A DNA stretch of 64,000 bases from Trichosphaerium sp. ATCC 40318 (lineage: Eukaryota; Protista; Tubulinea): NCBI GenBank assembly GCA_038496445.1, contig JALMLS010000507.1, positions 620,001 to 684,000 on the forward strand, written 5' to 3'. Under the pieces are notes generated by a model, which was given only the letters and a program-made list of their open reading frames with translations, did no database searches and was not told the origin of the DNA. Below, in pieces: positions 57,501-60,500 of this stretch (the stretch's first letter is position 1; each line of letters opens with the position of its first letter). Position numbers and translations under genes: made by a program.

Positions 57501-60500
57501 AAGGATGGCAAGCGCAGAGGCGATAAACAAGCTAAGTTTGGTGGCAAAAAGCGCGAAGAAGCCAAGCCAGAAGAAAAAAAAACAAAGCTTGTTTACAAAG
57601 CCAAGGAACCCAAAATGAAATATGTTGCAAAGAGCGAGCTTCGCAAGATGGAACAGGAGAAAAAAGAGAAGCTTGAGAGTGAAGCTGGAAAAGAGAACAA
57701 AAGCCAAAACGAAAAGCAACAACCTCCTCAAGAAAAGACCTCTAATGAAAGACGCATGAACAAAGAGCGCAACAACAGAGGTAGAAATCAAAGAAATGGC
57801 AATCAAAGAGATAATAATGATGGCGATTTCGAAGACTCAAAGCCAAGAAATGACAGGAATGACAGAAATGACAGAAACAACAGGCGGAATAAGGACAGAA
57901 AATCGCGATACGAAAAACGTGGTACGTTTTTTTTTTCTTACTTTTACGTACCAAAATCAAATGTCAACTGAAGTCTGACAATACTTTCAATTATTTGCTT
58001 TGTTCGCAACACTTAAAGCTTATTCTACTACCAGATGGCCAAAAGAAGCCAAAAACTCGTATGGCCTACGTGCCAAAGGCCAAGGTGCAGATTACAACTG
58101 TATCTGACTCCAAACCCACATCAAAGGCTACAAACGTGTCAAAAGCTGTAAAAGAAGTTACGCCACCGCGGAAAACTGACAAACAGCAAAATACTGAGCG
58201 TAAACCTCAAATCGTCAAGGGCTTTGATTTAACTGGTGATGCTCCTATTCTACCTTCAGGCGTAGTAGTGGTGAACGAACAACCTGGTATCGAGCATAAT
58301 GATGACGATGGCGAGTGGAACGTCGCTAAGACCAACGGTCAAAAACGACGTGAAAAAGCGCTTGAACGTGCCAAAGAGCGTAAAGGAGTACGTTCTATTT
58401 TTTTACCATATTTTCTTCACTTTTTCCATTTTATTGGCGCTTTTTTACCCTTTCTTTTTGATAAAAATGATTACGAGCGATTAACGCTCGGCGAACTGCT
58501 GAACCTCTGTGAGCACAAGAACTTTCTCCCTGATTTATTTTAAAAGCCATACAAGTTTCGACTGTTTACTCGCTTTGTGTCAATCCTAATGTCTTCTTCT
58601 AGAACCGTAACGCTGCAAGAGCCAAGCGTGGGGATAACCACTACAAGAAAGACCAAAAGAAGCAGCCTCCACGGCAACAAAAGAAACAAGTTGTAGCCGA
58701 ACCACAAACGGAGGAAATCTCACTTCCTGTTGTTACTGCCTCGACACAAGAGAATGTGGTCACTCTCAAGATCTCTGTATCTCAGAACAGTGTTGTAGAA
58801 GCTCCATGGTCGGTACCTGCTACGCCTCCGAAGCAAGCAAAAGTCTTTCTGTCTGAAATAATGCAAGAGCAAATTACCCAAGCTGATGAACCTGAACCTG
58901 AAAAAGAGGTCATTGCTGAAGTTGAGGTAAAACGCGAAAAGCCAAAGCGGAATAAAGACCGTAAGCAGAAAGACAGAAACACCAAGGGCAATGCAAAGGG
59001 TAATAACAACGAGAACCAAGGCAACAGAAAAGGTACGAAAGAGCTCTTTTTAAAACTTGTTTTATCTCCTCTTTTTTTTTTCTTTTCGTTGCTGCAATGA
59101 TGTTTGTGGAAGAGCCGTCAGAGTTTATGTGCTGATATTTTTCCAAAATCGAAGAATCTAATAAAACTGCTGAAGTAGCATAAAACACCAAAAATCTATT
59201 CTCTTTTTTCCTCTTTTGCTTCACGTGCTGATATTGTTCAAAGGTCGTCAACAGGCAAAGTTCAAAAACGAGAGAAAACCAACGAAGCAAAAGCCTAAGA
59301 AGACTAAACCTAAAACAACCAGCAAGTGGCTGCCAAAGGCTAAGAAACCCGTTGAACAGCCTCAACAAGAGGTGAAGGCAACCGAGGATGCACCTGCAGT
59401 TACAGAGAAGCCTGTTAAAGCCGACAAGCCAGTAGCCGAAACAAAGCCTGTAGAGGCTCCTATCGTGAAGCCATCACCTGTTCGCCCTGTAACAAATGCT
59501 CCAATTGCAAAAATCACTGTACACAATTCTGCAGTTATAAAGAAGGATGAGCCTGAAGTCAAGCAAGAACCTGTTGCTGCTCCTGTACACAGACCTTCTT
59601 CTGCTGGAGGCGAAAAGCAACCTGCTCAAACACAGGCAGCTGTCCACGCCAACCGTGCTCCTCAGCGCCCTGTTTCAGCACCTGCACGGTACGTCTTTAA
59701 ACCTTTTTGCTTTTTTTGGACTTTCATGTCCATGAATTTCGAAAAACACAACTTCGCGATGATTATCTATTATGCTGTTACCCGACAGACCTTGCAGTGG
59801 TGACCATTCTCTCTGAGAAACCCTACTGAGATCTAAAAAAAAACCAGCTTTTTTTTTGTTCCTTCGTTATCAATGCTCTGACGTACCTAATAGGACTCAC
59901 CAGCCTCAAATAGCTGCTGTCAACACACTTTTGACACCGTCGCCTATCAGACCACTCCCGAATGAAGCCTACAATCCTCCTTTGGGACAAGATATGCGAA
60001 CAGCTGTTGTTCAACAACAACAACCTTATAATCCACAAGCAGCTGGTGCTTGGGGTACTCAGTACTACACTACACAAGCTCCATTCCAAGCACAAGGTTA
60101 CTCTCAGCCGTCCATGTTTGTTCACTTCTCATCACCTGGCGCCTTCACGACACCATACGGAGTTGCTTACGCTCCTCAGCAACACTCCAATGGCGGCATT
60201 GTTGGTTATGCTCCTCAACAACAATTCATTGCTCCTGGATCAACCCAGCACACCATGGCTGCGCAACAAGCGAACTTGGGCATGGAACAAGGTATGTTAA
60301 AGCAACGTTTTATTACCTTTTATGTTCACTTCTCTAAATTTTCTTTTAGGTGCTAAGTACTCTAACGATCAAGGTTTACTCCGTGCTCGTTGGTCTATGG
60401 GTACTTCTATTGCTGTTCCTCAGCAAGTCATGTCTGATAATATGGCAAGACATCACGGTGCCCAGATACGAGCTCAGCCTATTGAGAGGCCACAAACACT

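Follow-up and report, generated by a model that had tools for sequence, protein, structure and literature searches.

The 64,000-nucleotide (nt) stretch of the Trichosphaerium sp. ATCC 40318 genome that was analysed here (positions 620,001 to 684,000 of contig JALMLS010000507.1; hereafter the window) contains a complete box C/D small nucleolar RNA (snoRNA) of ~91 nt, which we read from the sequence at positions 59090-59180 on the plus strand, within an intron of a protein-coding gene. Next to its box D' lies a guide of the U49 (SNORD49) type, and further downstream a second element that is complementary to the adjoining stretch of the same ribosomal RNA (rRNA). Box C, box D and a terminal stem of 6 base pairs (bp), the parts that a box C/D RNA generally requires, are all present, with a single deviation, in box C (Table 1). 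An earlier prediction made from the letters of the DNA (below, the original prediction) had drawn attention to the string GGAAGAGCCG-T-CAGA in this interval; it is found at 59108-59122 on the plus strand, and all the parts of a box C/D RNA are arranged around it.

The RNA evidence available for the locus consists of the assembled contigs of four runs. Spliced contigs of two of these (X1 and X2), which come from two different studies, skip the 211 nt at 59033-59243, and the skipped segment has GT..AG ends, indicating that the snoRNA lies in a genuine intron of an expressed gene. The splice junction (AAAAG/GTACGA ... TTCAAAG/GTCG) is ambiguous by 4-6 nt, and the snoRNA sits ~63 nt upstream of the 3' splice site. 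A Pfam search with four exons of the host gene found no family and did not confirm the label 'PRRC2-like'; the host gene is for this reason left unnamed.

To which rRNA segment the guide is complementary was read from the organism's own rRNA. The genome (70 Mb, 642 contigs) has many copies of the ribosomal DNA (rDNA). Its small subunit (SSU) rRNA is 2653 nt long (L001 320-2972) and very divergent, even in the 5' terminal helix, and its large subunit (LSU) rRNA measures ~3.8 kb. As a separate observation, rDNA units stand near the ends of many contigs (C481, C592, C6, C34, C75 and others), with an inverted pair on C481. The native LSU rRNA reads ...UUUUUGAUUCUUCGAUGUCGGCUCUUCCUAUCC... and has GATGTCGGCTCTTCC at L004 4822-4836. 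The D' guide forms 10 perfect bp with CGGCTCTTCC of this rRNA, the paired strand being CGGCUCUUCC (L004 4827-4836), and G59114, the fifth base upstream of D', stands opposite the C after CGG (L004 4830, LSU position ~3330). The duplex therefore shows what is generally asked of such a guide, namely at least 10 bp, a target opposite the fifth base and one unpaired base before CAGA. Thus, the claim that the guide is antisense to the peptidyl-transferase segment of LSU rRNA and that the D+5 rule selects the C after CGG holds for the native molecule. We take this C to be E. coli C2510, in the peptidyl-transferase ring.

The guide and its D' box agree with the Rfam SNORD49 consensus, AGGAAGUGCCGUCAGA, at 14 of 15 positions and in the same register, and the guide differs by one base from the consensus of Plasmodium snoR28 (RF01604), AGGAAGUGCCGUCcGA. 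The vertebrate and Plasmodium consensus places a U opposite an rRNA U; in the present snoRNA an A stands at this position, which makes its duplex fully complementary. The D' guide, D' box and register are otherwise those of SNORD49/U49 (RF00277, clan CL00062), plant AtU49 (RF00337) and snoR28, and the box C/D architecture and intronic location are likewise shared, whereas the entire 3' half of the molecule is unlike. SNORD49A/B guides human 28S Cm4456 (Cm4426) (PMC9941101), and AtU49 Cm2869 is tabulated as the equivalent of human U49 Cm4426 (PMC3511168). The predicted target of the present guide, the C after CGG in GAUGUCGGCUCUUCC, is the one modified in these species (human Cm4426/4456, Arabidopsis Cm2869). 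The D' guide is hence predicted, from sequence, to select the LSU C homologous to human 28S Cm4426/4456, in agreement with the proposal that the site is that of SNORD49.

The second element, ATCGAAGAATC, lies between C' and D, 11 nt from box D. It is perfectly antisense to GAUUCUUCGAU in the LSU rRNA (L004 4814-4824), giving an 11-bp helix two bases 5' of the D' target. Because the two helices fall on adjacent LSU segments, together they could take up 21 of 23 successive bases of the rRNA, the D'/C' motif forming a loop between them. When the internal region of the snoRNA was shuffled, 6 of 20,000 shuffles reached 11 bp within 40 nt of the target (p ~3e-4). Extra base-pairing of this kind is described by van Nues et al. 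2011 (PMC3116282), according to whom conserved elements pair over 4-11 bp immediately flanking the methylation site and lie mainly between D' and C' or in an unused second guide region, not next to a D box; the extra pairing boosts methylation 2-5 fold in yeast, and human U49 is among the carriers named. Like the elements treated there (yeast snR75 and snR76, human U16 and U49), ATCGAAGAATC is complementary to rRNA that flanks the target and occupies an unused second guide region that is not box-adjacent, and its 11 bp stand at the top of the published range. The likeness to human U49 holds at the level of this general description. The present snoRNA differs from these in its lineage, coming from a protist.

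Two further copies of the snoRNA were found in the genome, on contigs C39 and C2. The three copies lie in introns of three different genes, each on the sense strand of its intron; the host gene on C2 reads, by eye, as a PP2A-family phosphatase. Their cores are 92-97% identical and their flanks 42-60% identical and unalignable, a disparity that places the observation beyond chance. Boxes C, D', C' and D, the guide GGAAGAGCCG and the 11-mer ATCGAAGAATC show no change in any of the three paralogs; the spacer before box D holds four of the seven variable core columns, an indel included. The sequence ATCTAATAAAA, which overlaps this spacer, is altered in the C2 copy. In the terminal stem 17 of 18 cells are paired, and three of the six pairs are changed on both sides. 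Such a distribution of changes speaks for selection on a box C/D RNA in which the bases adjoining box D do not act as a guide. Downstream of the C39 copy, in the same intron or the next exon (L008 1610-1735), a stretch that contains GUGAUGA may be a further snoRNA.

Table 1. Parts of the snoRNA and its host intron (positions in the window; all features on the plus strand)
Feature	Position	Strand	Remarks
Host intron, 211 nt, GT..AG	59033..59243	+	Protein-coding expressed gene; spliced contigs of X1 and X2
5' half of terminal stem, UGCUGC	59090..59095	+	Pairs with 59175-59180
Box C, AUGAUGU	59097..59103	+	Last base departs from RUGAUGA; invariant in the three paralogs
Spacer UUGU		+	Between box C and the D' guide
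D' guide, GGAAGAGCCG	59108..59117	+	10 perfect bp to native LSU rRNA; invariant in the paralogs
Box D', CAGA	59119..59122	+	One U after the guide; letters and register of the SNORD49 consensus; invariant
Box C', UGAUAU (degenerate)	59133..59138	+	Alternative UGCUGA at 59130-59135; invariant; putative assignment
UUUUCCAAA		+	Between box C' and the accessory element
Accessory (extra base-pairing) element, ATCGAAGAATC	59148..59158	+	11 perfect bp to native LSU rRNA; invariant
Spacer, 11 nt, A/U-rich	59159..59169	+	Holds most of the proposed SSU guide
Box D, CUGA	59170..59173	+	Read from sequence; invariant
3' half of terminal stem, GUAGCA	59175..59180	+	Pairs with 59090-59095; compensatory changes in the paralogs

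We consider it likely, with a probability of roughly 0.7, that the locus encodes an intronic U49-type box C/D snoRNA that combines a guide for the LSU C with an 11-bp accessory helper helix and in which box D is preceded by a spacer. The snoRNA would be processed out of the excised host intron and would form a particle with the usual box C/D proteins (fibrillarin, Nop56, Nop58 and Snu13). Pairing of the D' guide with CGGCUCUUCC would set fibrillarin on the C after CGG (~LSU C3330), while ATCGAAGAATC would pair with GAUUCUUCGAU, immediately 5' of the target, so that the C'/D' motif would be clamped between two helices. The accessory helix itself would direct no methylation and would most likely stabilise or speed target binding. 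We infer that the RNA accumulates, that the C is methylated and that the accessory helix has a stimulating role. In that case a little-studied protist lineage would have yielded a guide of the U49 type whose accessory helix is unusually long and clean. The snoRNA supports an ancient methylation of this peptidyl-transferase-ring cytosine, and it suggests that yeasts and animals are not the only groups with extra base-pairing beside the target. Because its helices flank two unpaired bases of the catalytic centre, the locus offers a convenient natural test of accessory pairing in a tightly structured rRNA.

Several observations weigh against this interpretation. Box C and box C' both depart from consensus, and positions 59055-59151, which include much of the snoRNA, are covered by no contig of the four runs. 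The SNORD49 model (RF00277) gives 11.0 bits (E = 1.3 for 111 bases), whereas its gathering score is 37, so that the match to the family model, which the original prediction had proposed as a check, fell short; with gathering thresholds applied, Rfam reported no family anywhere in the window, and permissive scans gave sub-threshold SNORD49 and Plasmodium snoR28 only. Because of this score, the snoRNA is named U49-type by its guide and target and not as a scored member of the family. The D' guide also has a second possible target, UGGUGGCUCUUCCA, in a species-specific expansion segment of the LSU rRNA (L004 1655-1668, LSU ~155-168), where a pairing of 12 bp (10 Watson-Crick and 2 G-U) would place a C at LSU ~161 in the methylation register. 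As the chance of such a match is estimated at ~5% (0.05 per rRNA), we treat this second target as a mere possibility. Finally, the conservation of ATCGAAGAATC is known from three close paralogs of one genome, and among the matches listed when metagenome contigs were scanned for a box C followed by the U49 guide, no other U49-type snoRNA carries an equivalent 11-mer.

This last result would suit a single-guide U49-type snoRNA in which the 11-mer is neutral, being either what is left of an ancestral second guide or a coincidental match, and invariance across three copies that are 92-97% identical is in itself weak evidence of selection. We nevertheless regard a neutral 11-mer as unlikely. The shuffle probability of ~3e-4 speaks against a chance match, the position and length of the element fit the extra base-pairing class of van Nues et al. 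exactly, and variation among the copies is concentrated in the adjoining spacer, with the 11-mer spared.

The metagenome matches listed are mostly compact archaeal small RNAs (sRNAs), together with several eukaryote-like snoRNA families. The second halves of these eukaryote-like families are all unlike, and none carries an 11-mer of the ATCGAAGAATC type. Two of the eukaryote-like matches (L096 and L039) have the U49 D' guide and, in the D-guide position, AUCAAUCCAACG, which is followed directly by CUGA in L096 only. AUCAAUCCAACG is antisense to CGUUGGAUUG, a segment of LSU rRNA that lies beyond the U49 site, ~45 nt to its 3' side; the sequence that accompanies the U49 guide thus differs between lineages. 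On prokaryotic genomes the same search pattern gave 71 matches, ~35 of them bacterial and ~35 archaeal. The bacterial matches are without sRNA features, and their number is at chance level, close to an estimated expectation of ~28. The archaeal ones (L133-L201; in the metagenomes L012, L026, L046 and others) carry an identical GGAAGAGCCGUCUGA, and nearly all have a clear C', D and terminal stem. Their carriers are Nitrososphaeria, Nitrosocaldus, Nitrosopumilales and Thermoproteota, and among the Asgard archaea Njordarchaeota and Promethearchaeota.

The archaeal GGAAGAGCCGUCUGA sRNAs fall into at least five D-guide classes. In one of these, the D guide AAAUCGAGGA (or AUAUCGAGUA) stands directly before box D (L141, L160 and L193; metagenome members L046, L058, L070, L086, L109 and L127). 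LSU rRNA was sought in five of the sRNA-bearing archaeal genomes and found in Nitrosocaldus only; on this one molecule (L203), the antisense of AAAUCGAGGA is found as CCUCGAU, immediately 5' of that same target. These archaeal double-guide C/D sRNAs therefore have the same D' guide and box as the Trichosphaerium snoRNA, and one class pairs with both flanks of the target in a geometry like that of the accessory helix. They differ in being compact (~55 nt) and in that their second element abuts box D, for which reason it would itself be expected to guide methylation. Pairing to both flanks of the target thus recurs, in the AAAUCGAGGA class and in the snoRNA described here. The shared guide suggests that a methylated peptidyl-transferase-ring C may be common to archaea and eukaryotes. 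The likeness to the archaeal sRNAs may be due either to descent or to convergence on a universal target. Among ancient snoRNAs, Hoeppner and Poole could identify very few with a counterpart in archaea, and the cases they discuss do not include U49. A speculative and rather improbable extension is that the accessory element is the relic of an ancestral archaeal-type double guide that moved off box D and became a pure binding clamp on either side of two unpaired bases of the peptidyl-transferase ring. Were this true, the U49 guide would join the small number of guide RNAs that can be followed from archaea to eukaryotes, and some of the 'extra base-pairing' would represent fossil double guides.

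The extent of the pairing raises another alternative, that the RNA is mainly a folding chaperone or timing device for the peptidyl-transferase ring, holding the flanks of the two unpaired bases away from their native partners, with methylation secondary. Two helices over 21 of 23 consecutive bases of a functionally central rRNA strand would be in keeping with such a role, as would the existence of archaeal sRNAs that pair on either side of this site. However, neither the boxes nor the D'+5 register is disrupted, and both agree with those of a known methylation guide. The present evidence does not separate chaperoning from guiding, and we judge a mainly chaperoning RNA to be quite improbable. 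It is very improbable that the copies are non-functional, that is, mobile or retroposed sequences that resemble a snoRNA but have lost their expression. Three dispersed copies and a snoRNA without contig coverage in the four runs could be so explained, but the boxes, guide and accessory element have remained invariant while the flanks diverged past alignment, the compensatory changes in the stem indicate selection on RNA structure, and all three copies are intronic and in sense orientation.

The stretch next to box D had been proposed as a possible second guide, for SSU rRNA. The element in question, ATCTAATAAAA, is indeed present, at 59156-59166; its first three bases (ATC) belong to ATCGAAGAATC, and 3 nt separate its end from box D. 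The motif antisense to it, UUUAUUAGAU, occurs in many eukaryotic SSU rRNAs. This motif is absent from the native 2653-nt SSU rRNA, in which the sole match within two mismatches is an unrelated U-rich stretch. For the 15 nt upstream of box D, the best pairings with native SSU and LSU rRNA are heavily mismatched (at least five mismatches in the best SSU pairing), and a search of the whole rDNA unit for helices of at least 9 bp found none abutting box D. Native U2 small nuclear RNA forms no helix of at least 7 bp with the region from C' to D. A position at LSU ~1902 was considered as a target for the sequence upstream of box D and rejected, as the pairing (11 of 13 bp) is A/U-rich, has an internal mismatch and involves a variable region, and the paralogs do not preserve it. 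A second LSU site of U49 is tabulated in plants and humans (At Cm1510 / Hs Cm2409; PMC3511168). For a guide to this site, whose homologous position in the native LSU rRNA was not located, no D-adjacent pairing of at least 9 bp was found anywhere in native rRNA. Positions 59159-59169 are therefore best read, on sequence grounds, as a probable spacer without a target.

When both proposed guides were set against the organism's own rRNA, the LSU guide accordingly stood, with its 10 perfect bp, and the SSU guide did not, complementarity to the native SSU rRNA, the lack of which the original prediction had named beforehand as decisive, being absent. A dual guide that methylates SSU rRNA at UUUAUUAGAU through a D guide ATCTAATAAAA is hardly credible, for although the element exists, its motif is missing from the native SSU rRNA even at two mismatches in any plausible place, and the stretch itself varies among the paralogs, indel included, is changed in C2 and stops short of box D. 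Proposed second guides need to be checked against the rRNA of the organism concerned, and the SSU rRNA of this genome is highly divergent.

Both adjacent long introns of the host gene also bear box C/D snoRNAs on the plus strand, at 58460-58548 and 59757-59836, which adds to the case for an intronic guide snoRNA at 59090-59180. The upstream one has a guide at 58484-58497 that forms 14 perfect bp with LSU ~830 and is followed by CUGA. Run X2 contains a 166-nt contig that is confined to 58450-58576 of this neighbouring intron and has adapter letters at both ends, indicating that a short fragment spanning the 58460-58548 snoRNA was present in an RNA-type library; no such adapter-flanked contig lies over the snoRNA at 59090-59180. 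The downstream one has a guide at 59773-59784, which forms 12 perfect bp with SSU ~714.

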